Positions 3,410 to 37,023 of a stretch of 37,023 nucleotides of DNA are shown here, in pieces (position 1 is the stretch's first letter; each line of letters begins with the position of its first letter). The notes below the pieces were generated by a model, which was not told the DNA's origin, ran no database searches, and saw only the letters and a program-made list of their open reading frames with translations. Source of the DNA: Basidiobolus meristosporus CBS 931.73 (taxonomy: Eukaryota > Fungi > Basidiobolomycota); assembly GCA_002104905.1 (NCBI GenBank), contig MCFE01000776.1:1-37023 (forward strand), in the 5' to 3' direction. Position numbers and translations under genes: made by a program.

Positions 3410-5410
3410 GCTAATGATACTGATATCAGCAAGACAGAAGAGGATCATGTGGTGCACATTGAAAAGGTCTTAAAGAAGCTGAGAGAGAACAAACTATATG
3501 GCAAGCTAGCCAAGTGTGAATTCTCCAAGGAACATGTTGAATATCTGGGACACATAGTGACTAGCACAGGAGTGACTCTAGACCCTAAGAAGGTTGAAGT
3601 TATCAAGAATCTGAAGCAGCCCCATAGCATATCAGAACTCAGATCATTCCTTGGAATGGTCTCCTATTATTGGAGAGTTGCCAAGTCCTTTGCAAGTATA
3701 GCAGCCCCTTTAATTGATATTCTCAAGAAAGACAATACCTACAAGTGGGAAATAGCTTGTGAGATGGCTTTCCAGACACTCAAGGATGAACTTGCTCAGC
3801 TGCCAAGCTTAAGAATACCTGGCTTCAGAAAAGAGTTTATTCTATGCACAGATGCTTCAGATTATGAAATTGGTGGAGTGTTGAGCCAAGAACTCAAGGG
3901 AAAGGACTCCCCAGATGCCTTTGAATACAAGAACCTGAACTCAGCAGGACAGAACTATCCAGTGCATGAGAAGGAGATGCTTGCTATAGTATACATTCAG
4001 CAATTTGATTTGGAGAATGTCTACTACCCTGGGAAAAACAACATGGTTGCTGATGCCTTATCAAGATTGGAACATGTTGCACAACTCAACTTGGTGCATG
4101 AACCAGACTGACCTAGCCTATTACCTAAGTACTTGGAGGACCAAGCCACTCCTAATGAGTTGGACAAAGAGATCAAGAAGATAATCTGGGACAAAGCCAG
4201 CAGATTTGTGGTACAGGATGAAACACTCTACCAAATTGTTCATGGGAGCCCTATTACCTATTGCCATTATGTTGCTTGCCTGGATTTAATACATAAGCTA
4301 CACAATGGATATGGACATCCTGGAATTGAAGGAACCTATAGCCTTGTGAAAGCCAGAGCATGGTGACCCAGAGTAAAACAAGAAACTGAGAAGCTAGTGA
4401 CAACATGCCCAAATTGCCGAATCAGCAAGGCCAACCACAGAGAATTGCTGAGCTCTTTCCCTTGGAGCCAGTAAGACTATTTGAAAGATGGGAAATTGAC
4501 TTCATTGGAACATGGTGTAGCAGGGTTGCAGTGACACCCGCTGACAGATGTGCTCATTCCTATATTTTCTACTTCACTATTTCTCTACTACCCTTATTTT
4601 GGTTTTATCCCATTTGTCTTACCTGATCAGTACTATCCCATAAGCCGGTTGACTATCACATGTGCTTACCTTATTGCATAAGTTATTGCCCACTTTATGT
4701 AAGATTACTAGCAGTAAGATCAACATGTGTCACCATCCCTACCATTTCCATACCATATATGGTATCCCTATGTTACACAGGTCTCAGAGTACTAATTCCT
4801 GATTGGTTGGATGTGCTGTGCCTCTTAGTACCTTCTGGCACCTACATTCATAAGTCATTCTGATGTCAATAAGATTTCTATTGATATCCAGAACCTTTTG
4901 GAACACCACAATTAGTAATCACTTGAACAGTAAGAAAAGTACATTGTCATCTCAAAGGGCGCTGAACCCAGCACATACTTTTGTTAAGATGCCAACTAAG
5001 TTGGGAATTTTAGCTCAATGATTTTCCCTTGACAAGCTTGTGGCTTTAATCCCCATCATATTAGATTAGAGACAGAACCCAAGTATTCCTAGCAAGCTTT
5101 TGCCAGAGGTTATTGCACCCAGTGAGCACCCCACACACAAAACACTTGAGAAGTGTTGGACATACCTCTCCCTTGGACCTATTCACCACCACAACAGCCA
5201 ACTACCAGGAAATGCAACTATTGGATCCTAGAAGCCATTGACCATGCCACTAAATGGCCAGTGGCTAAAGCAGTACTTGTAGCCAGTGAGCAAGAAGCTG
5301 CAAGTTTCATCTACCATGAGATCCTTATGAAGTTTGGATGCTCTGTTGAGATTCAATCCAATAGAGGTGCAAACTTAATGGCAAGGACATTGGAAGCTTA
5401 CCTGGAAATG
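3410..5410 (+). pseudogene. Ty3/Gypsy pol fragment 1 (RT 3' end, RNase H, integrase)
   Basis: YGKLAKCEFSKEHVEYLGHIV; FILCTDASDYEIGGVLSQ; integrase zinc finger HNGYGHPG...CPNC; rve motifs WEIDFIG and ILEAIDHATKWPVAKA. Confidence 0.95.
4516..5193. mobile_element. Solo LTR, family X, short variant (678 bp), inside Gypsy integrase
   Basis: TGTAG...CACCACA; flanks ATGG/ACAG; homologous to 6325-7739, 17307-18378 (inverted) and 25795-26517. Removing it rejoins the integrase frame. Confidence 0.92.
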
Positions 5411-6324: not shown

Positions 6325-7739
6325 TGAAGCAGGATCATGGTGACACCCAATGACAAATGTGCTCATTCCCATCTTTTCTACTTTGCTATTTCTCTACCAC
6401 CTTTATTTTAGTTATATCCCATTTGTCTTATCTGAACAGTACTATGCCATAAGCTTGCTTACTATGACACCTGCTTATTTTATTGCATAAGTTATTCCTC
6501 ACTTTATGTATGACTCCTATATGTATGTGCTTCAATAATAGGCAGGTACCCATGCCAGCACCTATCACAAATGACCAACCTGCATCACCATCCCACTAGC
6601 TTTCATTTATTATGTGGTATCCCTGTGTTGCACAGGCTTTGGAATACTATATCAGTGATTGACTAAATGTGCTCTGCCCCTTAGAAGCTTCTGGCGTATT
6701 CCTGGAACATTCCTGGCTCATTTGATGTCATTAAGGTTTCTACTGATCTCTAGAACCTTCTGGTGTTACAAGTCTTGGTATAAGAGTTGTAGAGGAATAG
6801 AGAGTTTAGCTAGTGATGAATTCACTAGAACTTGAACTGATTTTTATCAAGGTTCCAGTAGCTCCTTAAATACATTTTGCAAAATCAATTGCTGACTCAT
6901 TGTATTTCTAATATAGGTTGTGGCTGATGACTCATTCAATTGCATCATCATCACCCAATAAGATCCTACTTGATATTTATTCCTGTCTGATCAAGATCTG
7001 CTCATCCATTTGCTGACTAATGCTACTAATTTGATAGATAACATTAATATACTGATAGGCTAAACATATACCTAATTGATTTGACTAAAAGCTGATCTAA
7101 CTTAAATATTCAGGTGGTAGATTATAACACTGGAATACCATGATTAGTAATTGCTTAGCCAGTGAGATAAGTATATAAGGTAGGCAATCCCTTAACAATA
7201 TACTAACTTGTCAATTAGTGTAAACACAGCTATCTGCTACAACCTGAACTTCCAATCCTTAACCACATGATACTCTCAGGTGACTGTGCTGACAGCCAAC
7301 TGACCAGGGTGGCACTTCCAGTGAGGAATACCCAGAGTGCATATCTTTTACCATATTTGATTTTTCTTGAACTTGTTCTTGCACAGGCAAAGATACTTTT
7401 CTGTCTTAGTTACTATTTACACAATTCCATTCTGATCCAGTCCCCTCTGGTGGAGTTTTCAATTATTTTGACTTTGGAAACTTTAGTATATTGTTATCCT
7501 AGAAGATGATGCACCGTGCACATACTTTTGTTTATACACCAACTAAGGTGTCATTTGCAGCTCAATAGTTCTCCCTTGACAAGCTGTGGCTTTATTATCC
7601 TTCACATCAGAGTAGTGACAAAACTCAAGAGTTCCTAGCAAGGCTTTAGTAGAGGTTATTGCATGCAGTGGACACCCCAGACACAAAACTCTGATAAAGT
7701 GTTGAACATATCTCTCCCTTGGACTTATACACAACCACA
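6325..7739. mobile_element. Solo LTR, family X, long variant with nested LTR-Y
   Basis: TGAAG...AACCACA; flanks AGGG/ATGG; about 1045 bp after removing the nested insert; host accessory ORF resumes at 7740. Confidence 0.88.
6764..7129. mobile_element. Solo LTR, family Y (366 bp), nested in LTR-X
   Basis: TGTTAC...ATAACA; perfect 4-bp TSD CTGG at 6760-6763 and 7130-7133. Confidence 0.92.
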
Positions 7740-9189
7740 ATGGCTAAAACCAGCAGCTTTGTCAAGAACTTGTCATAAGCAGGACTGAATGCTCCAAAAA
7801 AATGGCAATGAATAGTCAGGTAGCCAGAAGAATGCCAATAAAGGATAAGCAGGCAGAGATAGATGCATCAGTGCAGCATAAATTAAGGAGAAAACATAGT
7901 TTGATATAAGAAACACTCAATCAACATGGCAGTGAAGGGCCTGAGAGTGATAAAAACCCACAGCTTACTCAGTGGCCCATCACAAGCAGGGCTGAAAGTT
8001 CTAGACAAGTGGCAAAGAAACATCAGATTGTCACAAGAGTGCTGGTATGGGACAAGCAGGCAAAAGCAGACACACCAGTGCAGCATCCATTAAGGAGAAA
8101 ACAAAGAACTATACAAGAAGCACCCAGTCAAAGTATTGGTGTATGACTTGGCAGTGAGCAAGGTAAATGGTAACAACAAAAAAGTCTACCCAAGCCAGTG
8201 ATAGGGAACTGTGAGAAAAAAGCTGTAGCTCTCACCAATTAAAGCTGTCTGCTCAGAACAGCCTGAATCCCATCATAGCCAAGAAGAATTATCATCAAGA
8301 CCAAAGCTTTCTTCTCAAGAGTTAGAGGTGCAGTCAGTTGGTCTACACTCCAGTGAGGTAGATAGGTTTGCTGAGAAAAGCAACTTGTCTTCCACTCCCT
8401 CCACATCCTCAATTGATGATAGAATGGAGATACAACTGGCAGACAATGCAACAATGTCATGAATTCAAAATACTATCACAATGCCTACAGTGAAATTTTG
8501 GACCATTAATAGGCACACTAGGAGGTTGCATCACATCTTCAACAGCAGTGTAGAAGAAAATGCCCTTGAATATTGCAAGATCTTTTTCAAAGAGTGGCAG
8601 ATGTGGTGCCAGACCTTGCTGAGCCAGCTGAAGACCAGGGCATATGGGACCAGAGAATGAGCAATGGCATAAAGCCATAGGGCTCCTGCCAAAGTCATGG
8701 AAAGATTGTGGTACAGCGGAAATAATTATTTCATAGAAGATTTTGATGGAACTACTTATTGAGTGTGGCTTTGTGCTTATTATAGTGTTGGGTATTGGGA
8801 CTTGTATTGGTCAACACAACTGGCAATTGAAGCTCAACTGAAGCTTCAACAGAAACAAATCTAATTGTATGCATTAAAAGTGAAAGAATTGGTTGAATCA
8901 GGATGTAAGGAGTCAGACAAAGAAGCTATATCCAATCAATGGACAAAAACATGGAAAGTGATTGAGTGCCCAATATCAGAGAGTGCAAAAATTGGCAGAG
9001 GACCAATCAAAAGTCACCTTTACATAGTTTTGTAGAAAAAATTTGACCAAGTGTTTTGTTAAATCTGGGATGCAATTTTTTTTCAACAGTCTTTGTATTT
9101 TGCCCTGATGGGATCCATACCTCTTAGTCACAGGACTTTACTTTTGTGACAGCCCTCTGATGGGATCCTCACATTTAGTTCTATAGGGT

Positions 9190-9509
9190 ATAGACTCACA
9201 ATATTTGTTAGACAAGCAGGCAAAAATGGATAAATCAGTGCAGCATTCTTCACAGTGAAAATGTAGTACAATACAAGAAGCACTCAGTCAATGTAGTAGT
9301 GAAAGACTTGGCCATGAAAATGGCAAAGTAAAGAAAAGAAAGTCTACCTTAACCAGAAACAGAGAAGTATGAGAGAAATCTGCAGCTCTTGCCAATTAAT
9401 GATGTCAGCCCAGAGCAGGCTGACACACAATATAGCCGAGTACAGTTACCAATAAGACTACTGCTATTCCTATAAGAGCTGAAAGTGCAGCAACTTGAGC
9501 TACACTCTA
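9190..9509 (+). pseudogene. Further fragment of the CMC accessory ORF (repeat unit to C-domain junction)
   Basis: Aligns by eye to about 18470-18770 (GACAAGCAGGC...CAAGAAGCACTCAG...TTGAGCTACACTC). Confidence 0.75.
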
Positions 9510-9940
9510 CCCTATGAAAAATAATTTGGTCCCGCAAGTGGATCTGGTCTGGATCAGCCATTAGGATCTTGCTTGGAAACCGTCATAATACCAGTAGCTT
9601 GGAATTAGTGACCCTCTTGACAATCAAATAATGGGATCACAACAGCACATTGCTGATTTTACTGCCAAATAAAGCTATAAAACTTGACGGGGTTTGATTA
9701 GTGCTGTGACAATAATTGCATGGCATTGTTGCTGTCTTGTAGCACTTTACAAACTTTAAGTGGATCTGATTAGCTAGGATACTCAATTGCCTTATATGGT
9801 AAAAAACTTGACAGTATATCAACAGCCTCACAGCTTGACTCTAAAAGCATTATTGAGGCAGTATGGTGGCCTACAGCTAGTTTTGCATAATGCTGCCATA
9901 CCAATTTACTAAATGGTGTTTCCTTTTTCTACCTCCCTAG
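9510..9940 (-). mobile_element. CMC/CACTA terminal fragment (transposase-side end)
   Basis: Starts CCCTATGAAAAATAATTTGG like 12746 and 29041; homology lasts about 430 bp. Confidence 0.85.
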
Positions 9941-12900
9941 GCTATAACTGAATTTACCATGACACTTTACTGTGCACAAAGGCATCCTCAGGACTTGGCA
10001 AGGAAAGTTGACTTGCATTCAGCCAAGGATGACAAGTCCGGCATTTTATGCTTTGCAGCAATGAAGCATGTTCTCCTTGAGGCAAAGCAGACTTTCACCA
10101 TTAGGAGACTTTTGTAGTCAAATCTGCCTGACCAGTCAACCAAGGAATCAAGGAGTGCTGTTGCTGAGAATCAGACCTACACTACAGACAGAATTGACCA
10201 ACTTGCTGAGCAGCTACAAATCTAGCCCTCAGGATTAATGGCTCCGCTGAAGTAGCTACTGAGAGCCAAAAACCTTTGCCCAGACATTGCATCTGGTGTG
10301 ACTCTACTCAGCATGCCAGAAGAGAAAGCTCAGAGCTTAGTCAGCTACTAAGAGAAGGAGCTGTAAAGCTTGATGCTGATGGAATGCTTGCTGGCAGGGT
10401 AGAAAGAAGGATCCCCACCAATTTCAGAAGAGGAGGGATGAGAGCTCTTTTCCAGAGATCTGACTTAGCAACCAGAAATATTGCTGTTGATACCCCTATT
10501 GGTACTCATACAGTGAATATAAGCAGCCCTGACAACAGACAATACAAAGTTGATGCCTTTGCTACCAAAAGACACCTTCCTGAAGAACCTGCCTGACCCA
10601 TCCTTAGAGGACCACAATTTGAAGGGCCTGAAGTTAGCATTGACAGAAGGCCTGGAATACTGCCCACTCAAGATCTAATGCCTCAGTTTCAGATGACCTT
10701 ATAGATAGCAAACTACTCAAGCCCTCAGCTGATTAATGAGAAGCTGCTGAAGCGGAACCTTACTTTGCTGGTTGGAGAAATCATAAGTATATCCCCATCT
10801 GTTATCAGGACCGTTGATGCGCAGCTTCAAACAAGAAAAAAAGCCATTGAACATATGGACACCCACATAATCAGACAAGCCATGAAGACTACCAAAAGGA
10901 TGACAACATTACTGAATATAAGACCTTTTACTCAGTTGCAACTGCTGTGGCAAAAGAATATATATATGATGACCCTGCTGACTGCCATATTGACAGTGGC
11001 TCACAGATTTGTGTTATGCTGCTAGACTTCCAGACAACACTCAGAAGCAAAGAGCTACTGCCTGTTGATAGAGATATTGGATGGAACATGACTGATGCAA
11101 ACTCAGGATCTAGTCCACACTATGGTGTAGTGCACAAGTTCCCTACTGAGGTACAACAAATCAAGGTCTGGCTTCCCCTCTTTATCTGCCAGAAAGCAAA
11201 CCTTGACCTTCTGCTAGGCAGACCATGGGAGACCAGTACTATGGCTACAACTACCAATTATTCCAATGGGTCAGTGTAGTACACTATACAAGGATCAAAC
11301 TCAGGACTACAGTCAATGTTCTGTGGTGTAACACCCTACAATAAGAGGACACATACTGCTTTCCAGAAGATGCATTTTGTTACAGAAGAAGATGAGGAGC
11401 CTTACAATATAAACCCCAACATTTGGAGCTGCTCATTAAGCATATAGAAGTGGACTGCCATAGTTTGAACAAAATTCAAGACAGCTGAGCAGAAGATTAG
11501 ACCATCACCTACACCTCTGACTGATGGATCTTGACCTGCTAATTATATCAGTCCACCAGAAGAAACTCCTGGAGTTATACAGCTTACACCCAAGTGACTT
11601 AGGCAACTTATCATTGATGATGGAAACCTAACACCAGAAGAGATCTTATCATTCAAAGAAACCCTGAAAAGGTATGATAAGGTTTTCTCATACAATGACA
11701 AGGAGATGGGGCTCTCAAAGACATCAGCTGAAGAACCTATCCAGATTTATACAGTGCCACACACACCTGGCATATAAGCCTTACCTACTGCCCAGAGGAC
11801 TACAAGCTGATGTGCATAATCTACTTAAGAAGTAAATTGATGCTGGTATCCTAGAGCCTTGCCATGGAACTTATGCTGGCAGATGGTTGGTGACCAAAAA
11901 GAAAAATTGAAAGCCCCAATTCATTCAAGACATGCAACCTGCAAATGCTGTCATTATCAGAGATGCTGTGATACCTCCATTTGTTGATGACTTTACTGAG
12001 AGCTTTAGTGGTCACTCTATCTACTCAACATATGATTTCCAGCTGGGATATGACCAGATCCCACTAGATGAGACATCAAGAGATATGTATGCACTCCAGA
12101 CACCATCTGGACTGTTAAAGATGACAAGACTAGCCAAGGGGCTTCAAACTCTATGGCTCAGTTCCAGCAATGCAGGGCAAATGTTCTGTACCAGTTTATA
12201 TCTGAAAAACTTGCAGTCTTTGTTGATGAAATAGGCATCAAGAACCAAAGTTTCAGGACACCATTGAAGTTCTGCATAGAGTAAGAAAGTTTGCCTATAA
12301 CTGTATTTCAGACAATGATGCCACATTAGGAGCCATTGAAGATGCTGGACTCACCATCAGTGCTGAGAAAAGCAGCTTTCATGTATCAGAGATATCCATT
12401 GTTGGACAAAATGCAACACCTTTGGTTGTTCACCTGGAGACTGCAAGACACAAAAAATATGCAACTAGCCTACCCCCACAAATCTAACATAAGCTTGGGG
12501 CTTTGTGGCAGCTTGTGGGTTCTTTAGGATCTGGATCCCAAGATTTTCTGAGATAGCAGAGCCAATTTACCAACTACAAAGAAAGCATACCCTATTTATC
12601 TGGGGAGAAATACAAGAAGAAGCCATGCAAATACTAAAAGAGGCCTTTGTATCTCCACCAGTTCTAAGACCTTTTGACTATCAAAAAACTGAATGCCCAT
12701 CTATTTTGACATTTGATGCAAGCTATATAGGAGCTGAAGCACTACCCCTATGAAAAATAATTTAGTCCAGCGGGTGGATCCAATCCAGATCATCCGTCAA
12801 GATCCTGTATAGAGACCATCATAATAACAACACCTTGGAACTAGTGACCCTCCTGACAATCTTATAACAAGATCACGATGGTGTTTTGCAAATTTCACAG

Positions 12901-12988
12901 CCAAATAAAGGGATAAAGCTTGACAATTTTTGATTGGTGCTGTGACAATATTTGCATGGCATTGTTGTGGTCTTTCAGCGCTCTATTA

Positions 12989-15911
12989 CTATTTTAAGTG
13001 GATCCAGTTGGCCAGGACTTCCAATTGCCTTATATGGCAAGAAACTTGACGGTATTTTGATGGCCTCACAGCAAGACTCTGATGGCTTTTTCTTGGCAGT
13101 ATGACAGCCTGCCACTGGTTCTGTATAATGCTACTGTACCAATTTACCAAATGGTATTTCCTTTTTCTACCTCCCCTTGTGCAATTCATATATTGCACTG
13201 TAGAATCACTTTTCTTTATTTGCTTACCCGCTACTACCTTGGGTATTCCACATTTAGTTCAAATCAAAAAAAACTATGGGCTCCTGCTTACTAACCTCTA
13301 CAAACATGCACACCTGCTGCAATTGACATACTTCTATTACCTTGACTTTACAGCTTTTTAGTGTGATACTTGCAAAGTTGCCATATACCTTGTACTGCTG
13401 GTAGCATGTACATCTTGCAAACATATGCTTGGTTGTTGCCACTTCTGCCATGAATACCTCCTGAATATCTGCAAAGAACTTCTTGGTATTTAGCCAATAT
13501 ATTCCTTCTCCCTGCGGATTCTAGTCCCTCTTATAGGTGCACTCTGGCTTTTGTTTGTGTGAATTCTGTATTGAATGGTGTAGAAGTTGGCTTGTGACCA
13601 CAAGAAATCTGGCATATCTTGGTGGAGTTTCCTGATAAAAATTAGTTGCTTGTTGCACCCAGCCCAACTTTGCATTACTTAACTGATTACCCATGCATTG
13701 GGCCTGCTTAGCTACTTAATGCCATAGGCATAGGTGTCTCCATGTGCACATCTGTCCTCAGTATTTTCCAACTCTTTCTGGCTGTCCTCCATGTGCCAAC
13801 TCATCACATCCATGACAGACTTGAAGGTAATATTCTTGATGAGATTGGGATATGGGAGTACCTGTGACTTGACTCGTCTTCCTATCTCCCCACACATCCA
13901 CTCCATAGGAAATTCCCAAAAGGTGAAGCAAGGCCTGATATTCTCCACACACCGTGCAAGATGGAGTAGAGAATGGATACAGTAGCGGCAGTGATCTACA
14001 TGTTCAGCTTTATGTTTGTAGTATAGCCGCTCAAATCCCATCACAAACTCCTCACACAATAGCTGTAGATGCGTCAAGTTGGTATTGGTGATCTGCTTCT
14101 GGATAAATATTCCTACAATGTCCACATATGACTCCCAATGCTTCCAATGTACTCTTGGTAGGAATGGCTTGAGAACACCACTTGAATAAATACATATCCA
14201 GTTCATCCAGTCTTTTCATTTGTATTTTTGCATATGCGTATGAATATTGATTGGAGCCCATGAGAAGTACTTAGGGTAGCAGATACTCTGTAAAATCTTG
14301 CCAATTCTTTCAAATCTCTCTGGTATCTCAAAGGGCTCATTTTGCTTGAAATGCACCATGCACAACTTGGTTATCAGTATAGGGATATTGTTGAAAGCAA
14401 ATGCATTGCTCCTAGTGGAAAGCTTTTGCGCCAACAGATACCCTCTATCTTAAGTATCTCTGGTTTCCAATTGATTCCGTATTCCGGCCAATGGCTTATA
14501 GCTTGCCAACTTTGCTGCAACTGCACGCTTACTTCTGTACGTTCTCTCTGTGAAAAGATGATGTTCTTAGTGCTGGTGTTTGGGTAATAGTAATGTGTGT
14601 GAGTTGTGGAGTAAATCCCCTGGATCTCACACATTTGATAGCAATACCATCCATTGTTCCTGGAAAAACTTTGCTATCTTGCTGATGGCTGGGGTATCTC
14701 CAATGCAGATAATAATATGCGCTTTTACATGACAGCCATTTACTGTTATCCCACTGGAAAGCCTACAAAATTCATTCAGCAATGAATACAGGTAGCTATC
14801 CAGGTTGGATGGTGATTTAGGCCCAGATACCAGTGAGACTACTATCAGATTATTACTCTGATACCATAAGATGGGGGGCAGATTCAGATCAATGAGAATC
14901 CGTAGCCAGCAGGATTTGCTGGTAGAGTACTTGTTTAATGAGAATCCATCAAGTGCTAAAGCAAAGGCATGGTCATACATACCTTCAAAGTAGCCCTTGC
15001 TTCTTAGCTGTTTGTAATGTTTGCCATCAAATATATTGGATATGTTTGCACTTGATTGATACTGAGTGCAGTACTGTATAGCTTTGCAATATTTGTTGGA
15101 CTGCATCAGCTTCCTCAGACGGGGTATGACCAGAATAAATCTGGAGTGTGAACAATGTTTACCCTCAATGGTGGTAGATTCCTGACATTTGGACACTGTG
15201 CAATAGTAGCATTTGCGGATGTGAATGCCATGCAACTATTAACATATGCTGGAATCAGGACAGTCTCTGGATCATATGTTGCCAGCGGCATGACGGTTGT
15301 CCACTTGCACCATGTACATGGTAAGTTGCATCCTGGTATGATTTTGGCAAGAAGTAGTAATAAATCCTCAAAGCCCCCATTACTGATATTAGTGGAAACG
15401 CACCACTTCTCTAGCCACAACATTATATGATTCACCAGTAAATGGATTACTGGGCTTACTTGGCTCCACAAAGTATCCTTGGTGTTTGTTTCAACAGGTG
15501 TTGTCTCATTGCATACAGGGATTAGACAGGCTCATACATGGTACTGTTATTAGGGGAGATAGGCTCAAAATCCATCAGTGAACCTTTTTGGTCAGAGCTA
15601 TCACTCTGCGTGCCATATTCAGAAGGCTGAGGTGAGCATAAAGGTGGCACAAACTCACCTGACTAAGTTTACACAAGGTGACAAAGACAGCCAGGTGCCA
15701 ACATAGAAGTATCAACTGGCCAGCAAGATAATGTTGGTAGAGTAGTGACCAATGAATTGTCAAATATGACTTGGGTGGCAAAACACTGGCCATGATCCTT
15801 GTAATACTTCCTATGCTGTCTGAGTGCTTCATGGCTGAGAGGCTTGCCACAATAGCCACATGGTTATTTTTCTCTTCTCTTACGGCGTTGAGTCAAAGTA
15901 GTCTTGTCCAT
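12989..15911 (-). pseudogene. tnp2/Transposase_21-type (CACTA) transposase, frameshifted
   Basis: Start MDKTT at 15911; AYVNSCMAFT...CPN; IFDGKHYK; ALALDGFS; LVSGPKSPSNLDSYL; IGDTPAISK; DUF4218-like HSLLHL...FWEFPMEWMCG. The 3' end is approximate. Confidence 0.92.
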
Positions 15912-16132
15912 GGTCAAACAGTTTGACCTTCAACAACGTAATGCCATTATATCACTTTTTGGTCAATACTCATGTGAGCTTAAGACAGTCTTGTATTTGA
16001 GACATTTTACCTACATGAATGTAAGATTAAATGATGACCCTCCATAGTAAGCATTATAAATAAAGTTGTGGCACCACATACACATGTATATGTAACACTA
16101 TTTCCCCTTTGGTTTGACTCACTTCCATATAT
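15912..16132. promoter_or_regulatory. Putative bidirectional promoter between transposase and accessory ORF
   Basis: ATG-to-ATG spacer is 221, 221 and 223 bp in copies 1, 2 and 3; contains TATAAATAAA at about 16056. Confidence 0.6.
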
Positions 16133-17086
16133 ATGCCACCAAAAAATAAAGCAAAGTTGTCTGGTACTCCACCAAACCCCACCACTGACAGCAACAGAAG
16201 AATGGTTAGACAACAGCTTGCTTTGACATTCAGTACAACAAGCAGGCCTACATCCAAAAAAGGTCCTGTGGACAGTGTGCCCATTGAAGGTATTAATGCC
16301 AACTCCTCAGACTCTCAGTCAAGTAGGCAATTGAGAACCTCTGCAGAGCCACAAGCTGACCATTATTCTCAGGCAGATGAGAATGTAGCAAACACAGTAC
16401 CCTCTGTTGAAGATCAGCAAGTGGCCATGATAACATTACCACCACCCATATTAGCAAGTATATTGTCAGCTCATACCAAAGCATTAATGAAGCAATTAGG
16501 TGCAGTGGCTGATAGGATAGATGCAATGGCCCAGAGAAATCTGGAAGTAGTCCAGAAACAGGATGAGCGGATAATACATGTAGAGCAATCAATATCCCAG
16601 GTAGAGAATGCAGTATCTCTGCTGCAAAGAAGGAACTCAAGTAGCTCAATGTCACAGCCAAGAATTGAGCCATTTCCCAATGTAACAGCAGAGGAACACC
16701 GCACAGTCTTTGAAGTACAACAACAGTGCCCAAAGATAAAGCCCACAGAAAAACCTATCATTGCATGGGAGGGAGACAATGTGGTGTTTATACCAAAGCC
16801 TAAAAATCAAAAGACATTGAAGATCCATGAAGCTTTTGAGTGCAATAATGAAGAGTGGGCTAATATACAAGAGGCCATCAGAAGTCTAGCATGCTATCAC
16901 CTTAAGGCTGGCATACCATGGGGTCATCAGGAACTCAAGGCCAAGCAGAATGCACTTTACTTGTTCCATGAGCATTATCTTGGACTCAAACAGGCAAACG
17001 GATTTTGGGCCAGCATTGATATGCTAAGAAAGTATCTTAAGAATAGCAGAAACTATCACAGGCAGAAGAACAAGGGTGCCATAGCT

Positions 17087-18575
17087 AAAAACCAGTGGCT
17101 TCCTCAAGAGCCCATTACAAGCAGGGCCAAAAGCTCCAGACAAGCGTCAAAGAGATGTCAGGCAGCTGGAAGAGTGCCAATTACGGATGAGCAGGCAGAC
17201 ATGGATGCACCAGCACAACATTTATCAAGGAAAAAGCATACTACCACTCAAGAAACACCCAGTCAACGTAGCAGTGAAGGACCTGGCAGTGATAAAAACC
17301 AGCCGCTGTGGTGGTGTATAAGTCCAAGGGAGAGATACGTCCAACACTTCTCAAGTGTTTTGTGTGTGGGGTGTTCACTGGGTGCAATAACCTCTGGCAA
17401 AAGCTTGCTAGGAATACTTGGGTTCTGTCTCTAATCTAATGTGAAGGGGAATAAAGCCACAAGCTTGTCAAGGGAAAACTATTGAGCTACAATCCCCAAC
17501 TTAGTTGGCGTCTTAACAAAAGTATGTGCTGGGTTCAGCGTCCTTTGAGATGACAATGTACTAAAGCTTCCAAAGTCAAAACAACTGTAAACTCCACCAG
17601 CAGGGACTTGATAAGAATGCAGCTTTGGTCAATAGTTACAAAGACAGAAAAGTATCTTTGCCTGTACAAGAACAAACTTGGGAAAGAATCAAATATAATA
17701 AAAGATACCTACTCTGAGTATTCCTCACAAGTAGTGCCTCCAAGGTCAGTTGGCTGTCAGCGCGGTTTCCTGGGAGTGTCCTGTGGTCTAGGGTTGGAAG
17801 TTCAGGTAGCAGCAGGTAGCAGTGATCACACTAATCAACAAGTCGGTATATTGATAAAAGGGATGATGATTTATTGTTGAGGGATAGCCTCCCTTATATA
17901 CTTTTTTTCACTGGCTAAGTAATTACTAATCATGGTGTTCCAGAAGGTTCTGGAGATCAATAGAAATCTTAATGACATCAAAATGACCTAAGAATGTTCT
18001 AAGTAGGTGCCGGAAGGTTCTAAGAGGCACAGCACATCCAACCAATCAGGAATCAGTATTCTGAGACCTGTGTAACATGGGGATACCATATATGGTATGG
18101 AAATGGTAGGGATGGTGACACGGGCTGATCATGTGTCACGGGTACTGGCGCGGGTACTTGCCTAATATAGAAGTACTTATAGCTAGTAATCTTACATAAA
18201 GTGAGGGGTAACTTATGCAATAAGGTAAGCAGGTGTGATAGTCAACCAGCTTATGGGATAGTACTGATTGGGTAAGACAAATGGGATAAAACTAAAATGA
18301 GTGTAGTAGGGATATAGGGAAGTAGAAAATAAGGGAATGAGCACATCTGTCAGTGGGTGTCACTGTCACCCCACTACACCGCTTTACAGGAGCCCATCAC
18401 AACTACGGTTGAGAGCTCAAAACAAGCTGAAAAGAAATGTCAGGTTGCCAGAAGAGTGCCAGCAAGGGACATGCAGGCCAAAACAGATGTGTCAGAACAG
18501 AATTTATCCAGGAGAAAACGTAGTTCTTTACAAGAAGCACTCAGACAAAGTAGCAGTGAAAGACCTGGCAGTGAT
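17087..18575 (+). repeat. Two 207-bp (69-aa) tandem units in the accessory ORF, split by LTR-X
   Basis: KNQWLPQEPITSRAKSS...SSEGPGSD and ...QEPITTTVESS...SSERPGSD; unit starts at 17087 and 17294. Confidence 0.88.
17307..18378. mobile_element. Solo LTR, family X, long variant (1072 bp), inverted relative to the other three
   Basis: TGTGG...ACTACA; perfect 4-bp TSD CCGC at 17303-17306 and 18379-18382; retains CpGs. Confidence 0.93.
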
Positions 18576-21039
18576 AAAGGAAAAGGTAAAGGGAAAAATG
18601 TCTACCCAAGCCTGAGACAGGGAGGCATGCAAAAAAACTGCAGTTCTTGCCAATTAACACCACAAGCCAGGAACAGAATGAATCCCATCATAGCCATGAG
18701 GAATTACCAACAAGAAAACAGCTGTTTTCACAAGAGTTGGAAGTGCCGCCAGTTGAGCTACACTCCAGCAAGGTAGATGAGTTTGCTGAAAAAGGCAACT
18801 TCTCTACCACAGCCTCCACAGCCTCCACAACCTCCATTGTTGACAGAGTGGAGATCCCTCTGACAGACAAGGCTACAATGTCAAGAGCTCAAAAGACTAT
18901 CACAATGCCTTCAGTGGAGTTTTGGAACATTAATAGGCACACCAAGAGGTTGCAGCACTTCTTCAAGAGCAGTGCTCAAGAAAACACACTGGAATATTGC
19001 AAGGATTTATTGCAAAGACTAGCAGATGAGGAACTAGGCCTTGCAGTGCGGGCTGAAGACTCGTACGTGTGGGAACCAGTGAATGAACAGTGGCATAAAG
19101 CTGCTGGGTTCCTTCCAAGGTTGTGGAACCAGAGCGTTACAGCAGAAATACTTATTGAGTGGTGGATTTTAATGGAGTTACTTGTTGAGTGTGGGGTTAG
19201 GCTTAATGTTAGTGTAGTGTATGGAGACTTCTATAGGTCAATACAATTGGCAATTGAGGTACAACAGAAGTTTCAACGGAAATAAGTTAATTTGTATGTA
19301 TGAAAAGTAAGAGAAACGGTTGAGTCAGGAAGTAAGGAGTGTGAAAATGAGGCAATAGCCAATCAATTCACACAAACGTAGGAGGCAATAGAGTGTCCAG
19401 GATCAGAAAGTGAGCAAATTGGCAGGGAACCAATTAAAAGCCACTTATACATTGTTGTGATGAAAAATTTTGACAAAGCTTTTTGTGAAATCTGGGGTGC
19501 AATTAATTTTCAACGGTCTCTGGATGGTGTCCTGACAAGATCAGTACCTCTCAGTCATGGGACATTAATTTTGTGATGGCCTTTTACTGGATCATCTCAA
19601 TAATTTTTCATAGGGTACTTTGCCAAGATGATCAAGATGACAACTGCTCTGTCTGCAGATATGAGAGCTGCCTACTTTCTTGTAGAGAACAAAGGTACTC
19701 ACAGATTAAGAGAGAGCTACTAGGTGTTGTGACAATGCTGAAGAAGCTGAAGTCACAACTCTACACAACACATTTTATCCTGGAGACAGATGCCAAGCCA
19801 CTTATACAAATGATCACAATTCTAACTGACCTGATGATGCCACCAAGCAATAGATGGCATGGCAGAAAATGCTTGACTTTGAGGTCAAACATATCCCTGG
19901 CAAGACAAATGTTGTGGCTTATGCACTCTGTAGGAAGGGACCACACTTATTTGAAGACTTAGACCTTCACTTTGATAATATGATTGATGCAGTGATCCAA
20001 CATATTGCTATCAAAGACCAAGAGAGAACTACCAGCAGCCTGATCAAAGAATATCTAAGGACACTCAAGAAACCTAGTTGGATGGATATTCATGAATTTA
20101 GAAAGCTCAGAAAGAAGGCACACCACTACTATCTCAAAGATGATCTTCTCTTTAAACAAGTGAATCCTGGACTTATGCCAAGAAGAGTAGACACTACCCC
20201 ACTAGAGCAACTGAGCATCATGACAAGTATCCACCAAGGAGAACCAGGAAATCCTAGAGGACAAGAAGCCACCTACAACACCACAGCTCAGAGGTACTAC
20301 TGGGAAAAAATGTACTATAATATCCAACACTTTGTTGAGTCATGTATAGCCTGCCAGAAGAGATCCTCTAAGCATTATGCAGAACCACTGCATCCTACCT
20401 ACATAGTTTGTCTATGGCAAAAGGTTGGTATTGACCATGTCCACATGCCAACAGCTGGATCAAAAAAGTGCCTGATTGTTGCTGGAGATGACCACAGTGG
20501 TTGGGCAGACACTTGAGCCTTGGCCAACATCAAGAGCCATCCCATATGGAGATCTATACTTGAAGACATTATCTGTAGATTTGGCTGCATCCAATAGTTT
20601 GTTGCTGACAGAGGAGAGATGACATCCCAAATGATTCAGGAGCTGGTGAACTCTCTTGTAAGGATCTGTGAGAATAATACAACACTTTGGCCATAGCATT
20701 TACATATTGCACTCTGGGCAGATAGAATTACTACCAAGAGAACAACTAGATTATTGCCATTTAAGCTACTCTATGGACATGACTGCATACTACAAGCTGA
20801 GTTGGACACAGTCACTTGGAACTCTTTGAATTGGAAATCTAATGTCTACACTGAAGACCTCCTAGCCACTTGTATACAGCAACTTAATCACCATGACCCA
20901 AATATTAACAGAGCTGCTGGACAACTTATACACAGCTGAAGAACAAGGTGCCCTTTGACAAGTCACACTCAACAAGACCAAAACCACTATCATCTCTATG
21001 AAAAATTATTGAGATGATCCTGTCAAAAGGCCATCACAA

Positions 21040-25794: not shown

Positions 25795-26517
25795 TGTAGG
25801 GGGTGACAGTGACACCCACTGACAGATGTGCTCATTCCCATATTTTCTACTTCCCTATATCTCTACTACACTTATTTTAGTTTTATCCCATTTGTCTTAA
25901 CTGATCAGTACTATTCCATAAGCTGGTTGACTATCACACCTGCTTACCTTATTACATAAGTTATCCCTCACTTTATGTAAGATTACTAGCTGTAAGTGCT
26001 TCTATATTAGGCAATTACCAGCGCCAATACCCATGACACATGATTGACCCATGTTACCATCCCTACCATTTCCATATCATATATGGTATCCCTATGTTAC
26101 ACAGGTTTCAAAGTACTGATTTCTGATTGGTTAGATGTGCTGTGCCTTTTAGAGCCTTCTGGCACCTACATTCATAAGTCATTCTGATGTCATTAAGATT
26201 TCTATTGATATCCAGAACCTTTTGGAACACCACAATTAGTAATCACTTGAACAGTAAGAAAAGTACATTGTCATCTCAAAGGGCGCTGAACCCAGCACAT
26301 ACTTTTGTTAAGATGCCAACTAAGTTGGGAATTTTAGCTCAATGATTTTCCCTTGACAAGCTTGTGGCTTTAATCCCCATCATATTAGATTAGAGACAGA
26401 ACCCAAGTATTCCTAGCAAGCTTTTGCCAGAGGTTATTGCACCCAGTGAACACCCCGCACACAAAACACTTGAGAAGTGTTGGATGTATCTCACCCTTGG
26501 ACCTATACACCACCACC
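25795..26517. mobile_element. Solo LTR, family X, short variant (723 bp)
   Basis: TGTAG start; end ...CACCACC (terminal A changed to C); flanks CTGT/CCAT; host CMC sequence rejoins. Confidence 0.88.
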
Positions 26518-26879
26518 CCATCATACTGCCAATGTAATGCCACTAGAGTCTTGCTGTGAGGCCTTCAAATACCATCAAGTGTCTTGCCTTATTGGGCAAT
26601 TGGATGTCCCAGCTGGTTGGATTCACTTAAAATAGTTGTAGAGCGCTAAAAGACCGTCACAATACCATGTAATATTTGTCTCACCACAAATTGAATCTTG
26701 TCAAGTTTTATCCCTTTATTTGGCATTAAAGTTGGCAGAGCACCGTCATGATCCCTTTATAAGATTGCTAAGAGGGTCACTAATTCCAAGCTCCTGGTAT
26801 TATGATGGTCTCTAAATGGGATCCTGATGGCTGTTCTGGATTGGATCCACCTGCAGGACCAAATTACTTTTCATAGATT

Positions 26880-29040: not shown

Positions 29041-32000
29041 CCCTATGAAATATAATTTGGTCCCACAGGTGGATCCAATCTGGATCAGCCATTAAGATCC
29101 TGTCAAGCAACTGCTATAATACCAGCAGCTTGGAGTTAAGGACCATCTACACAATCTTGTGATGGGATCACAATGGCAAATTACTAATTTTACAGCCAAG
29201 TAAAATTGATAAGATATAATGGTGTTTGTACAGTGTTTTGCCAAAGGTGGCATGGCATTATTACGGTCTTAGTGTGCTTTACAATTATCTGAGTGAACCT
29301 TACCAGCCAGTACATCTGATTGCCTTATATGGCAAAATACTTAACAGTGTTTTGATGGCCTCTTTGCAAGCCTCTGATGGTATTATCATGGAAGTATGGC
29401 AGCCTACAGCTAGTTCTGTATAATGCTACCATACCAATATACCAAATGGTATTCCCTTTTTCAACTCCCCTAGTGCAATTCATATACTCTACTGTAGACT
29501 CACCCTCTTTCTTTGCTTACCAGTCACTAATTTGGGTATTCAACATACAGTTTGAATCAGAAGATACTATGGCCTCCCGCTTACTAACCTCTACAAATGG
29601 GCACACCAGCTGCAATTGACATACTTATATCACCTCAACTTTACGGCTTTTAGTAAGATACTGCAAAGTTGCCATACACCTTGTATTGCTGGTAACATAT
29701 ACATCTTGGAAACATATGCTTGGTTGCCGCCACTTCTGCAATGAATACCACCTGAATATCCACTAAGAACTTTTTGCTATTTAGCCAACATATTCCTTCT
29801 CCTAGCTGGATTCTGGTCTTCCCTATAGGTGTGTTCTGGTTCTTGTATGTGTGAATTCTAAATTTAATGGTGTAGAAGGCAGCATGTGATCAAGAGGAAT
29901 CTGGTATACCTTGGTAGAGTTCTCCTATTAAAAATTAGTTGCTTGTTGTACCCAACCCAAATTGTATTACTTAACTGATTATCCATGCATTGGGGCTGCT
30001 TGGCTTTGTAATGCTATAGACATAGGTGTCTCCATGTGCCATCTGTCCTAAGTATTCTCCAAGTCTTCCTGGCTTTTCTCCATGTGCCAACTCATCACAT
30101 CCATGACATACTAGATGGTAATATTCTTGATGAGATTGGGATATGGTAGTACCTGCACCTTGACTTGTCTTCCTATCTCCCCACACATCTGCTCCGATAG
30201 GGACCTCCCAAAAGGTGAAGGAAGGTCCAATATTTGCAATGCACCATGCACAATGGAGTAGTAAATGGATACAATAGTGGCAGAGATCTACATGTTCAGC
30301 TTTATGTTTGGAGTATAACTGCTCAAATCCTGTCCCAAGCTCTTTGCACAAAAGCTATAGATGTGTCAAGTTGGCACTGGCAATCTGCCTCTGGATAAAA
30401 ATCCTGCAATGTCCACATATGACTCCCAATGCTTCTAATGTACTTGTGTTAGAAATGGCTTCAGAAGGCCACTTGAATAAATACAGATCCAGCTCATCCA
30501 GTCCTTGCATTTGTATTGTTGCATATGCGTATGAATATTAATTGGAGCCCGTGAGAAGTACTTAGGGTAGCAGATACTCTGTAATATCTTGCCAATTCTT
30601 TCAAATATCTCTGGTATCTCAATGGGCTCATTTAGCTTGAAATGCCCCATGTACAACTTGACCATCAGTATAGGGATAATGTAACAAAGCAAGTGCATTG
30701 CTTCCAGTGGAAAGCTTTTGCTCCAACAGATACCCTCTATCTTAAGTATCTCTGGTTTCCAATTAATTCCATACTGTGGCCATTGGCTTATAGCTTGCAA
30801 ACCTTGCTGCAATTGTGTGCTGACTTATGTATATTCTCTCTGTGGAAAAATGATGTCCCTAGTGTTGGTGTTTGGGTAATAATAATGTGTTTGAGTTATG
30901 GTGCCCAGAGAAGCTGGCTTTCTTACTGATGGCTAGGGTATTTCCAATGCAGAAAATAATATGCACTTTTACACAACAGCCACTTAATGTTGTCCAGCTG
31001 GGCATCATACAACATTCATACAGCAATGGATACAGGTAGCTATACAGATTGGACGGTAATTTAGTCCCATATACCAGTGAAACTGGCATCAGATTTTGGC
31101 ACTGGTACCATAAGATAGGCAGCAGATTCAGGTTGATGAGAGTCAGTGGCCAGCAGTATTTGCTGGTAGAGTACATGTTTAATGAGAATTCATCAAGTGC
31201 CAAGGCAGGGGCATGGTTATACATACCTTCAAAGTAGTCCTTGCTTCTTAGTTGTTTGTAATGATTGCCATCAAATATTTCTGATGTGTTTGTGCTTGAT
31301 TGATACTGTGTGTGGTACCCTAGCTACAAAATATTTGTTGAACTGCATGAGCTTCTTTATATGAGGTATTACTGGCATATATCTGCAGTGTGAACAATGG
31401 TTTCCCCCAGTGGTGGAGGATTCATGACAAGTTAGACACCTTGCAGTGGAGGCATTCTCTGATGTGAACACCATGCAACTGTTAACAAATGCTATTATCA
31501 GGACAGTCTCTGGGTCACATTTTGCCAGCTGCATGATGGTTTTTTATTCATACCATGTACATGGTAAGTGCATCCTGCAATGATTTTTGCAAGAAGTAGT
31601 AGTAAATTCTCAAAGCCCCCATTACTGATATTAGTAGAAATGTGCCACTTCTTTGGCCACAATATCACATCACTCACCTTTAGATGAATTACTGGGCTCA
31701 CTTGATTCCATAGAGTATCCTTGGCATTTTTTTTCCACAGGTGTTGTCTTATTGCATAATGGGATTCTGTCAGGCTTGTGCAGGGTACGGTTGTAAGGGA
31801 AGATAGGCTCACAATTCACCAGTAAGCCTGCTTCCTCAGAGCTATCACTCTGCATGCCATATTTGGAAGGCTGGGGTGAGCCTAAAGGTGTCACAAACTC
31901 TCCTGACTCAGTTTGTGCAAGGTGATAAGCATAGCCAAATGCTGTTATAGAAATATCAAGTGGCCAGCAAGATATTGTTAGTACAGTAGTGACTGGTGAA

Positions 32001-33509
32001 TGGTAAAATATGACTTGTGTGGTAATGCACTGGCCATGATCTTTAGAATACTTCCTATGCTCTCTGTGTACTTCATGGCTGAGAGGCTTGCTACAATAGC
32101 CACATGGCTGTTTTTCTCTTCTTTTATGGCATTGAATTAAAGTAGTCTTGTCCATGGGGCAAACAGTTTGAGACTCAACAACATACTACTGTTATATCAC
32201 TTTATTGGTAAGTACTCATATGAATTTAAGATAGTTTTGTGATTGAGACATTGCACCTACATGAATGTAAGATTCAATGGTGACCTGCCATAGTAAGCAT
32301 TATAAATAAAGTTATGGCACCTCATATACACATATATATAACTCCATTTCCCGTTTGGCTTGACTCACTTCCATATATGTGCAGCCAAAAAATAAAGCAA
32401 AGTTGTCTGATTCCCAACTAAACCCTACTACTGACAGCAGCAGAAGAGTGGTTGGACAGCAGCTTGCTTTGACATTCAGTGTAGCATGCAGGCCTACAAG
32501 CAAAAAAGGTCCTGTGGACAATGTGCCCACTGAAGGGAATAATGCAGACTCCGCAGGCTCTCTGTCCAGTAGGCAATTGGCAATCTCTGCAGAGCCACCA
32601 GCTGACCATATTGCTGAGGCAGATGAAAATATAGCAAAAGCAGTACCTTCAGTGGAAGACCAGTAAGTGGCTGTCATAACATTACCACCACCTATATTAG
32701 CAAGTATGTTGTCAGCTCATGTCAAAGCATTGATGAGGCAATTAGGTGCAGTGGCTGATGGGATAGATGTACTGGCCCAGAGAAGCCAGGAAACAGTCCA
32801 GAGACAGAATGAGCAGATAAAAGGTGTAGATCAATCAATATCCCAGGTAGATAAAGCGGTATCTTTGCTGCAAAGAAGGAACTCAAGTAGCTCAATGTCA
32901 CAGTCAAGAATTGAGCCATTTCCCAATGTAACAGCAGAGGAACACCGTACAGTCTTTGAAGCACAACAACAGTTCCCAAAGAAAAGCCCACAGAAAAACC
33001 TATCACACCATGGGAGGGAGAAATTTAGTGTTTGTACTAAAGCCTAAAAATCAAAAGATATTGAAGATCTGTGAAGCAGTTAAGTACAATGATGAAGAGT
33101 AGGCTAACATTGAAGTTTAGCATTTCATCACCTTAAGGCCAGCATATCATGGGACTATCAGGAACTCAAGGCCAAGCATAATGCACTTGACTTGCTCCAT
33201 GAGCATTATCCTGGATTCAAACAAGCAAATGTTTTTTGAGCCAGAATTGGTATGCTAAGAACATATCTCAAGCATAGTAGAAACTGTCAAAGGCAGAAGA
33301 ACAAGGATGCAATGGCTAAAAACCAGCACTTCCTCAAGAGCCCATTACAAGCCAGGCCAAAAGCTCCAAACAAGCATCAAAGAGGTGTCAGGTAGCTGGA
33401 AGAGTGCCAATAAGGCAAAACCAGGCAGACACAGATGCACCAGTGCAACATTTACCAAGGAAAAAGTGTACTTCTACTCAGGAAGCACTCATTCAAAGTA
33501 GCAGTGAAG
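29041..33509 (-). mobile_element. CMC/CACTA copy 3, right-truncated
   Basis: Starts CCCTATGAAATATAATTTGG; transposase pseudogene on minus (ATG 32155); accessory ORF on plus (ATG 32379), cut off at about 33509. Confidence 0.9.
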
Positions 33510-33818
33510 CCATATGATGAAGTAAGCTGTTTAAAAATTTAGGTATAAGTCAAAAAATGCCTATTACTTTGTTTCAAGATAATCAAGGATGTATACAATT
33601 AGGTAGAAATCCAACTTTTCATGCTAGAACCAAGCACATAGATATTAGACATCACTTCATACGATGAAGCTATAGAGAGTAACTTAGTCTAACTTAGCTT
33701 ACTGTCCTACAGATGAAATGATTGCAGACATATTTATCAAACCATTAGCTAGAGACAAGTTTGACTATCTTAGGTCAAAATTAGGACTAGTCATTAGGAG
33801 CATTCAGTTGAGTGGGAG
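33506..33818 (+). pseudogene. Ty1/Copia RNase H 3' fragment with PPT
   Basis: EAI**SKLFKNLG...DNQGCIQLGRNPTFHARTKHIDIRHHF...DEMIADIFIKPL; PPT AGTTGAGTGGGAG at 33806-33818. Confidence 0.92.
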
Positions 33819-34010
33819 TGTTGTAAAAATTTGGAATTCCACCTAAATATTCACCCAACTGAGTCACTTGGATCATTACCTTCAAATCCTAGAGAATACT
33901 GACCAAATTCCTTGTCAGGATTTACTTAGAATATTTACCCAGAACATGAAAATTAGATAAGTTGTCCAAACAGCCCCAAACTTTGCACACATGTAAAGCC
34001 CTTGCAACAT
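33819..34010 (+). repeat. Copia 3' LTR (partial)
   Basis: TGTTGTAA directly after the PPT; related to 5654-5930. The right boundary is uncertain. Confidence 0.7.
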
Positions 34011-35147
34011 GTACATCTACTATATGAACCCGTTTTCTTTCAGCATTTGGCTGGTGTATCCACTGTATCAGGAGTAAAAGCTCCACATAAGGACTTTAAG
34101 GGGCACCCGTTAATGATGACATACAGATGCTACCACCCTGGTCCCAAAATAGGATTTCCAGCTGACCTTGGCAGATTACCAAGGAGAAGCCAATTTACTC
34201 ACTTTCCACGCAAGAATCTGCCAGCACAATGGATCCAATTTCTTGCCAAACCAATCCCAAGTCACGGAGCTGCTTACAACATGACGATTTCCCATGGGAC
34301 AAATGGGATGGATTTCCAAAGCTCCAAACTTCCCCAAAAACAAGTATTGCTTAGGTTACCGCGCTTTATCTCATGCGGCTCAGTATAGGGATCTATCGAG
34401 AAAGAGGATTGGTGGATCTGCCCAGGGTTTAGGCATTTCCGGAAGCCAGATTTTCAAGGCAACTAGTGCAAGAACACCAAGGGGCTCCGTACCGAATGGT
34501 GAAATATCAGGAATATGGGGTGAGTACCAAACACTTGCGACCAAAGGGATTGCCATTCTCGAGAAACTGCACCAATCATGATCGAGGAATCAGTAAAGAT
34601 ATCGGGTGGGAACGAATTGAATATGCGATCCTCTAGTTCATGGCAACCGCGTGCGGGGGAAAGCAATCACCATGACCCAACTCTGATAATCAACACCCTC
34701 ATGTCACAAGATCATTTAACAAACCAATCTAACCTTTTCGTGAGCCAAGCTGACCGACCAATCACAGGGACTCCAATCCCGTCGACCAAAAAAGTGGGCC
34801 ACTGACTTCACTTCGATGGCTCAAGGGCCAATGCCCTTTGAAAGGCGATTGCGCTATCGAATCCGACCGATCGTCCCAGCACACCTTGATTTCCGGATAT
34901 CGCTGCAAAAGTTAAGTGCGTTTTGTGTCGGACAGGGTGGCGGTAAATTAAGTGGTAACCAACCTAAAATCGGTTCGGCAAGCCAGTCAAGGTCGAGGAT
35001 CCCACCATGCGGTGTCACAGAATGCCCGGACCCACATTTTTGGCTTGATATGAATATGGCCGTCGTCAACCCAATAGTGTCGGCGGTGGACGACATGCAC
35101 AATCGCTACCGGGTCGAGTTAATCTAGCCGAGTGCTGACCATCATCC

Positions 35148-35154
35148 TATATAA
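35148..35154 (+). promoter_or_regulatory. Candidate TATA box of the transporter gene
   Basis: TATATAA about 83 bp upstream of the ATG at 35237. Confidence 0.5.
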
Positions 35155-35236
35155 CTCCTCAGCTCATCCCCTTGGCTATTCGTTCAACTGAAGTCCACTC
35201 GAGGCTCCCACTACCACCAGCTTGACTAAATCAACC

Positions 35237-36922: not shown

Positions 36923-37023
36923 TCACCAATCTTGTACAGCACTCATAAATCGATAATAAACCATCCCTCGTGATTCCACAATATTCGGTCAATAGATAGC
37001 CATCGTGATACCTGGTCTACCAC

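Follow-up and report, generated by a model that had tools for sequence, protein, structure and literature searches.

We analysed a window of 37,023 nucleotides, positions 1 to 37,023 of the forward strand of contig MCFE01000776.1 from the fungus Basidiobolus meristosporus CBS 931.73 (assembly GCA_002104905.1). The window is a transposon nest with a G+C content of about 41%, and the ratio of observed to expected CpG is 0.04-0.16 across the nest, up to about position 33,500, in agreement with the heavy CpG decay described in a first-pass annotation that was made from the letters of the sequence. Positions 12746-19615 hold an old copy of a CMC-type cut-and-paste transposon, inactivated yet full-length in structure. 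It carries a transposase gene of the tnp2 type on the minus strand and, head-to-head with it on the plus strand, a second gene which occupies half of the element and whose product belongs to no recognised family. We name this copy C1 and the other copies in the window C0, C2 and C3. The coordinates of all features are given in Table 1.

The element is bounded by terminal inverted repeats (TIRs) of 20 nucleotides, of which 18/20 bases are complementary, and its ends read CCCTATG...CATAGGG, the same in three sub-lineages. Among the other copies in the window, the CCCTATG terminus also stands at 9510 and 29041, and at 26878 it is degraded. The copy lies in the RNase H region of a Ty3/gypsy retrotransposon. 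Excising the element together with one TAC leaves an uninterrupted host reading frame with no stop, and the two host halves abut, because the Pfam family RT_RNaseH_2 is matched at its positions 1-41 on one side and 46-99 on the other. From the restored frame and the adjoining halves it follows that the boundaries and the 3-bp target site duplication (TSD) are those of the first-pass annotation. The termini of C2 are mutated, CTCTATG (20994) and ATCTATG (26878), and its flanks ATG and TAA form no 3-bp duplication, so the TAC duplication rests on one window copy, C1, in which alone both flanks can be read. An empty paralogous host site was not found within the window. A CACTAC sequence left of the element was considered as a true CACTA end and ruled out, since it has no mirror at the right end and the other copies begin with CCCTATG.

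A BLAST search of the element against the window gave four further copies or fragments, 10-25% different from C1. The order of the genes is the same in 4/4 window copies, each gene running outward to one end, the transposase to the left and the second gene to the right, and the second gene is kept in all four copies and in two sub-families with about 25% DNA divergence. In the runs X1 and X2 of the source sample, about 85,000 short contigs per run align to the element at an identity of at least 80%; in a second sample with the same species label, the number is about 6,000 for each of two runs. The transposon family is thus extremely abundant, which fits the large CMC-EnSpm expansions published for Basidiobolus genomes (Muszewska et al. 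2017, PMC5751038). Differences among these related contigs are mostly transitions. C1, C2 and C3 are dead copies in neutral decay, because the differences between them have no codon-position bias; a mild 2<1<3 codon-position pattern appeared solely against the more distant C0 sub-family, in the C-terminal region.

The transposase gene starts with an ATG at 15912-15910. Its open reading frame (ORF) at 14627-15235, minus strand, matches Transposase_21 (tnp2, Pfam: PF02992) with an E value of 2.7e-12 and 46.8 bits against a cutoff of 28.6, and weaker matches to the same family were obtained in C2 and C3. The catalytic motifs follow the D-D-C(2)C-H-E order, the arrangement that is given as D-D-C(2)C-H(3-4)H-E for EnSpm, Mirage, Chapaev, Transib and Plavaka (PMC12730594). 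At the N-terminus there is a zinc-finger-like motif, KQPCGYCSKPLSHEVHREHRKY, of the form PCGYCxKPLSHExHRxH, which is intact in C3 and contains a stop in C1. Two further positions were noted in the related contigs: one extra base behind 14393, between two transposase ORF pieces, is present in about half of them, and about two thirds have an additional base behind 15914, a little before the ATG of the transposase. Their absence from C1 thus represents private deletions of this copy or sub-family.

The second gene runs from an ATG at 16133 to a stop codon at 19574-19576, which sits 19 bp before the right TIR, and encodes about 790 amino acids (aa) once a solo long terminal repeat (LTR) is removed, in line with the plus-strand ORF of about 750-800 aa that had been annotated. 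Its N-terminal ORF of 433 aa comprises 389 aa of real protein and then reads into the solo LTR. Close to the end of the gene there are in-frame stops at 19286, 19304 and 19379; these are decay and not introns, because the stop positions differ between sub-families. A frameshift at a run of seven A (18631-18637) splits the frame of the repeats from that of the C-terminal domain in C1 and C2. In about a quarter of the related contigs by depth, an extra A behind 18630 makes eight A and one continuous ORF. Most copies therefore carry the frameshifted form, which could reflect plain decay of the homopolymer or mean that a non-autonomous sub-family has spread. Introns were also considered for the frame changes at 18586-18643 and 19286-19312 and rejected, as the candidates of 26-35 bp are too short; a 58-bp GT..AG candidate is in the wrong phase, and the A-run indel and the in-frame stops explain the breaks.

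The element had been called complete. This is right for its structure, which is full-length, and wrong if it is taken to mean intact: the transposase of C1 is broken into at least six ORF pieces, with a stop in its start region, and the second gene is split by the LTR and has one frameshift and three stops.

Table 1. Coordinates of the element at 12746-19615, its genes and domains, the host sequence around it and the other copies of the family in the window
Feature	Position	Strand	Remarks
Host Ty3/gypsy reverse transcriptase-RNase H, upstream half	12505-12745	+	RT_RNaseH_2 positions 1-41
Left TSD, TAC	12743-12745	none	Host frame restored on removing one copy
Left TIR, CCCTATGAAAAATAATTTAG	12746-12765	+	Inverted-repeat pair, 90% complementary
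Transposase gene (CMC/tnp2 type), broken	13500-15912	-	PF02992 and ORF pieces; C-terminal limit approximate
Motif E, FPMEW	13898-13912	-	Read directly
Motif H(3)H, HSLLH	13961-13975	-	Read directly
Motif C(2)C, mutated CYQMC	about 14617-14640	-	Intact CCQMC only in C2
Second D, IGDTPA	14687-14704	-	Read directly
First D, LDGF	14942-14953	-	Read directly in C1
Spacer between the divergent start codons, 220 bp	15913-16132		Presumed bidirectional promoter; TATAAATA at about 16055
Second gene, part before the LTR	16133-17306	+	ORF; relatives at E 6e-29, 6e-9 and 3e-7
MPPKNK start resembling a nuclear localisation signal, then disordered S/T/P/Q-rich stretch	from 16133	+	
Coiled coil	about 16418-16642	+	
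Conserved basic helical domain, about 120 aa	about 16700-17092	+	
First 69-aa basic repeat	17088-17300	+	
CCGC duplication flanking LTR-X	17303-17306 and 18379-18382		
Solo LTR (LTR-X), 1,072 bp, TG..CA ends	17307-18378	-	Not part of the transposon
Second gene, segment downstream of the LTR	18383-19576	+	
Second 69-aa basic repeat	18387-18590	+	S/T-rich linker downstream
Acidic C-terminal domain, about 215 aa	about 18899-19573	+	
Right TIR	19596-19615	-	Complement of CCCTATGAAAAATAATTTAG
Right TSD, TAC	19616-19618	none	Host frame restoration
Host Ty3/gypsy RNase H, downstream half	19616-19962	+	RT_RNaseH positions 21-87; RT_RNaseH_2 positions 46-99
Copy C0	1177-3412, 5946-6311, 7746-9188		BLAST against the window
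5' end fragment	9510-9937		BLAST against the window
Copy C2	20996-26876	inverted	BLAST against the window
Copy C3, truncated	29041-33509		BLAST against the window

To find relatives of the second protein, a profile made from an alignment of its N-terminal part (A2) was run against the full set of 1.84 billion representative proteins. Only three proteins were found, all of them singletons, and a free-standing homologue of the second gene was not found in this search. P0001 (299 aa, E 6e-29) and P0003 (243 aa, E 3e-7) are encoded on short ENA metagenome contigs, and P0002 (122 aa, E 6e-9) is the hypothetical protein KAK9738516.1 of Basidiobolus ranarum (assembly GCA_040143965.1, strain AG-B5). 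The amino acid identity to the relatives is about 30-43%, and the motifs P.NQKTL and YPGF.QANG.WA.IG are conserved with P0001. The metagenome contigs resemble the window, with G+C of 0.41-0.43 and CpG of 0.10-0.37. On both of them (L001 and L002) there is an upstream ORF on the opposite strand with the motif KKPC(G/F)YCxK(P/L)LSHExxRLH(K/R)K, which matches the N-terminus of the window transposase (tblastn 3e-12 and 1.4e-8). Thus the head-to-head arrangement with a transposase N-terminus, which the first-pass annotation had pointed to as the pattern to look for among homologues, is found in 2/2 relatives with upstream DNA; the third relative comes without upstream DNA. A contig of Basidiobolus ranarum (L003) contains the conserved domain twice in tandem, at 95-370 and 431-775, the first copy with stops; either the duplication is local or two diverged copies were assembled together.

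Other searches added no relatives. Protein searches by word index drew a blank for the N-terminal ORF, for the C-terminal one (212 aa) and for a transposase piece (202 aa), with length limits that may hide full-length relatives, and a tblastn search of plasmids was equally empty. The Atlas feature search stayed below threshold throughout: the N-terminal part scored 0.88 to hypothetical proteins of Mucoromycota, and the C-terminal part gave an ABC-membrane artefact. A scan of JGI metagenomes with the domain alignment gave no match.

Between the lineages, codon positions 1, 2 and 3 differ by about 0.4, 0.3 and 0.7, in a protein-guided alignment which itself favours positions 1 and 2. With this caveat, the excess at the third position shows selection on the second protein. 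The second gene belongs to the element because its relatives keep the head-to-head partner and show constraint at the protein level. It is thus a genuine and conserved part of the transposon lineage and not a passenger.

What the second protein does was approached by structure prediction and composition. With the decayed window copy as the target, AlphaFold2 reached a predicted local distance difference test score (pLDDT) of 52 and was usable only for the long helix of the coiled coil (pLDDT 72-81). With the metagenomic P0001 as the target, 1/5 models was a helical bundle over the conserved domain with pLDDT 83-89. An exhaustive structural aligner gave a best Z of 5.5 with neighbours that are mostly small DNA-binding helical domains at Z 4-5.5, all below the Z of 8 from which helical matches are trustworthy according to the notes of the aligner. 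These neighbours include BEN, homeodomain, Myb-like (Reb1, ARR1) and HMG-C1 domains. By shape, the ESM Atlas offered as leads a plant cluster that carries DUF8039 and Transposase_24, of the CACTA TnpA type, at a TM score of 0.43, and unnamed Basidiomycota clusters at about 0.5. The conserved domain is basic in both lineages, with isoelectric points of 9.6 and 9.9, and the repeats have isoelectric points of 9.5-10.2; the C-terminal domain is acidic.

These clues would suit a cofactor that is nuclear, oligomeric and DNA-binding better than an enzyme, and we propose with moderate to low confidence, by analogy with TnpA of En/Spm and the Myb-like protein of PIF/Harbinger, that the second protein acts as a TnpA-like DNA-binding, oligomerising cofactor of transposition. 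The element moved by cut and paste through its tnp2-type DDE transposase and landed in the RNase H of the Ty3/gypsy element, with duplication of 3 bp. Its autonomous form carries the two genes, starting 220 bp apart and transcribed outwards to both ends. The second protein may enter the nucleus by means of its basic start and oligomerise through the coiled coil, the basic helical domain and the repeats may bind the DNA of the element, and the C-terminal domain may recruit or regulate the transposase. Once inserted, this copy underwent decay through CpG deamination and received the solo LTR. As a whole, a dead, high-copy CMC element with divergent genes and a lineage-specific partner protein as cofactor is the best explanation we have, and we consider it somewhat probable.

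Several results weigh against this explanation. Pfam gave no match for the second protein (E values of 0.1 to 10), including to Transposase_23/24, Tet_JBP and Myb/SANT, and there was no sequence match to TnpA (Pfam: PF03004) or to any DNA-binding family. Sequence searches of the PDB were blank, and Foldseek against the PDB gave nothing at an E value of 0.001 or better, its matches being above 1. Four of the five models of the conserved domain were poor, the C-terminal domain was neither folded nor matched, and the Z values above count on this side as well. Furthermore, subterminal repeat arrays like those of En/Spm were not found beyond chance (k-mers in the terminal 300-500 bp against shuffled sequences), where CpG decay may have erased sites. 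Finally, every copy seen is dead, so that activity of the family is inferred from its structure alone.

A GGATCC motif with an adjacent CATCAG or CCATCAG was noted in several copies, including C0, C2 and C3, at a distance of 25-90 bp from both termini. In C1 it lies at 12770-12810 and 19530-19590; its count is not above the shuffled expectation, and it is a possible candidate for a binding site.

Other explanations of the second gene have to be compared with the proposed cofactor. The protein might be an anti-silencing or counter-defence factor, similar to VANC of VANDAL elements or to fungal TET/JBP proteins, which shields the element from cytosine methylation. From the CpG depletion and the excess of transitions it follows that the host methylates these elements, and fungal EnSpm, Plavaka and other transposons carry TET/JBP genes that were read as counter-defence (PMC12730594). 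However, these copies did become heavily methylated and decay, the protein bears no signature of a TET/JBP protein or any other enzyme, the modelled parts are helical and nothing in the sequence is specific to methylation. Moreover, the protein replaces a DNA-binding cofactor and does not supplement one. We regard this explanation as quite unlikely. The first-pass annotation had suggested an end-binding or anti-silencing accessory factor; of the two, end-binding is plausible, with weak fold resemblance to small DNA-binding helical domains (Z of at most 5.5), and anti-silencing is unsupported. Its statement that this fungal CMC transposon carries a second gene of no recognised family stands, with no Pfam match, no PDB sequence match and no confident fold match, and the structural check which it had in mind yielded the one helical bundle out of five models and no confident Foldseek match. 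A broader possibility, which we also consider unlikely, is an unnamed class of CMC accessory proteins, either a distant structural relative of TnpA/DUF8039 or a new anti-silencing factor in a methylating, early-diverging fungus.

That the gene was captured from the host and travels along without a role in transposition is very unlikely in our view. Transposons do capture genes, and the family in the databases is so small that a host origin stays formally possible. Against this, there are only three relatives in 1.84 billion proteins and both of those with upstream DNA are head-to-head with the same type of transposase, the gene persists in the four window copies and in two sub-families, it fills half of the element up to 19 bp from the TIR, and it is constrained at the protein level across transposon lineages, with no free-standing homologue found. 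Still more remote, and in our judgement extremely improbable, is a plus-strand frame that is open by chance in decayed DNA. The lack of codon bias among the window copies and the broken frame in every copy would be expected of such a frame, but a chance frame does not account for the conserved motifs shared with an independent ORF matched at E 6e-29, the third-position excess between lineages, or the extra A that rejoins the frame in about a quarter of the related contigs.

Plant En/Spm elements encode the transposase TnpD and the protein TnpA, spliced from one transcript, have CACTA termini and rely on TnpA to bind subterminal repeats. The element described here has CCCTATG termini and genes that diverge from a shared region of 220 bp, its second protein has no match to TnpA (Pfam: PF03004 and PF03017) and subterminal arrays were not detected. 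Thus none of the features by which CACTA/En-Spm elements are strictly defined was found here, whether CACTA...TAGTG termini, subterminal arrays or a TnpA homologue. The Transposase_21-type DDE transposase, the D-D-C(2)C-H-E motifs and a TSD within the range of 2-4 bp (TAC; 3 bp is the CACTA length) place it in the CMC superfamily.

PIF/Harbinger elements encode a transposase and a Myb/SANT DNA-binding partner protein, and both are needed. The two-gene layout with a basic, helical and presumably DNA-binding partner is similar here. The transposase superfamily is unrelated, however, the second protein has no Myb/SANT sequence match, and it is much larger, with a coiled coil and a C-terminal domain.

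Fungal transposons with TET/JBP genes were reportedly described by Iyer et al. in 2014. Additional genes in fungal CMC-group and other DNA transposons comprise TET/JBP, alpha-kinase and 'third proteins', some of them opposite to the transposase (PMC12730594). Like the elements of Kojima 2025 (PMC12730594), the present one is a fungal CMC(T)-group element with a duplication in the range of 2-3 bp and an additional gene in a cytosine-methylating genome. In contrast to them, its additional gene is not a TET/JBP dioxygenase (there is no Tet_JBP match, and the modelled parts, which do not extend to the C-terminal domain, are all-helical), its termini are not CA..TG, and its host is an early-diverging fungus, whereas the hosts there are rusts, mushrooms and truffles. 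It does not resemble Plavaka or KDZ elements either: only Transposase_21 was matched, and the element has a 3-bp duplication and CCCTATG termini, whereas Plavaka has the termini CATCA/TGT and Kyakuja and Dileera have duplications of 7 bp and 8 bp (PMC12730594). The expansion reported by Muszewska et al. 2017 (PMC5751038) concerns the same superfamily, at very high copy number and probably in the same genus. That study counted transposase domains only; the structure of the element, its termini and the second gene are not described there. Known, then, are the CMC superfamily, with its expansions in Basidiobolus, and fungal transposons with extra genes, which tempers the suggestion of an undescribed lineage in the first-pass annotation; the unusual terminus, the divergent layout and the orphan partner may be new.

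The solo LTR within the second gene is a secondary insertion private to C1, because roughly 30 contigs in each of the runs X1 and X2, from the same organism, skip exactly 17307-18378. Related LTRs are located at 4514-5193, 6340-7745 and 25795-26516. The LTR, in versions of about 0.7-1.1 kb, has inserted independently in at least three copies of the transposon family at different positions, and its longer versions have an extra internal segment of 333 bp (17563-17895) or of about 366 bp (in the copy at 6340-7745).

Further observations concern the surroundings of the element. Within 25 bp of the right end of C0 (about 9188) there is a 300-bp piece of the repeat and linker region of the second gene (9211-9507), after which a new left end of the transposon family starts at 9510; the two elements at 9188-9937 thus form a compound or are nested. 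C3 is cut off at about 33509, immediately before the region of a PHO4 gene. From 33500 to 37023 the composition switches sharply to a CpG observed/expected ratio of 0.6-0.8 and a G+C content of 47-53%. The gene there, which runs from 35222 onward, encodes a PHO4/PiT-type phosphate transporter, a family confirmed by an Atlas search, and at least one frame change in it suggests an intron.

The analysis adds the element structure of one dominant family in Basidiobolus-type genomes, which are swollen by CMC and Harbinger transposons. It also adds the unusual CCCTATG ends, and evidence that a conserved partner protein, restricted to the lineage and absent from the family databases searched, is encoded by half of the element. 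If this protein is a DNA-binding cofactor, it would stand beside TnpA as a second and independent illustration of the way in which a CMC transposase is targeted or regulated. If its kinship with TnpA/DUF8039 is true, a CMC ancestor with two proteins would predate the split of plants and fungi, and the gene order would have been inverted later. If it acts on silencing, transposon counter-defence would extend to early-diverging fungi. For genome annotation, the description helps with tens of thousands of gene fragments that are now labelled 'hypothetical protein' or left unannotated in such genomes.

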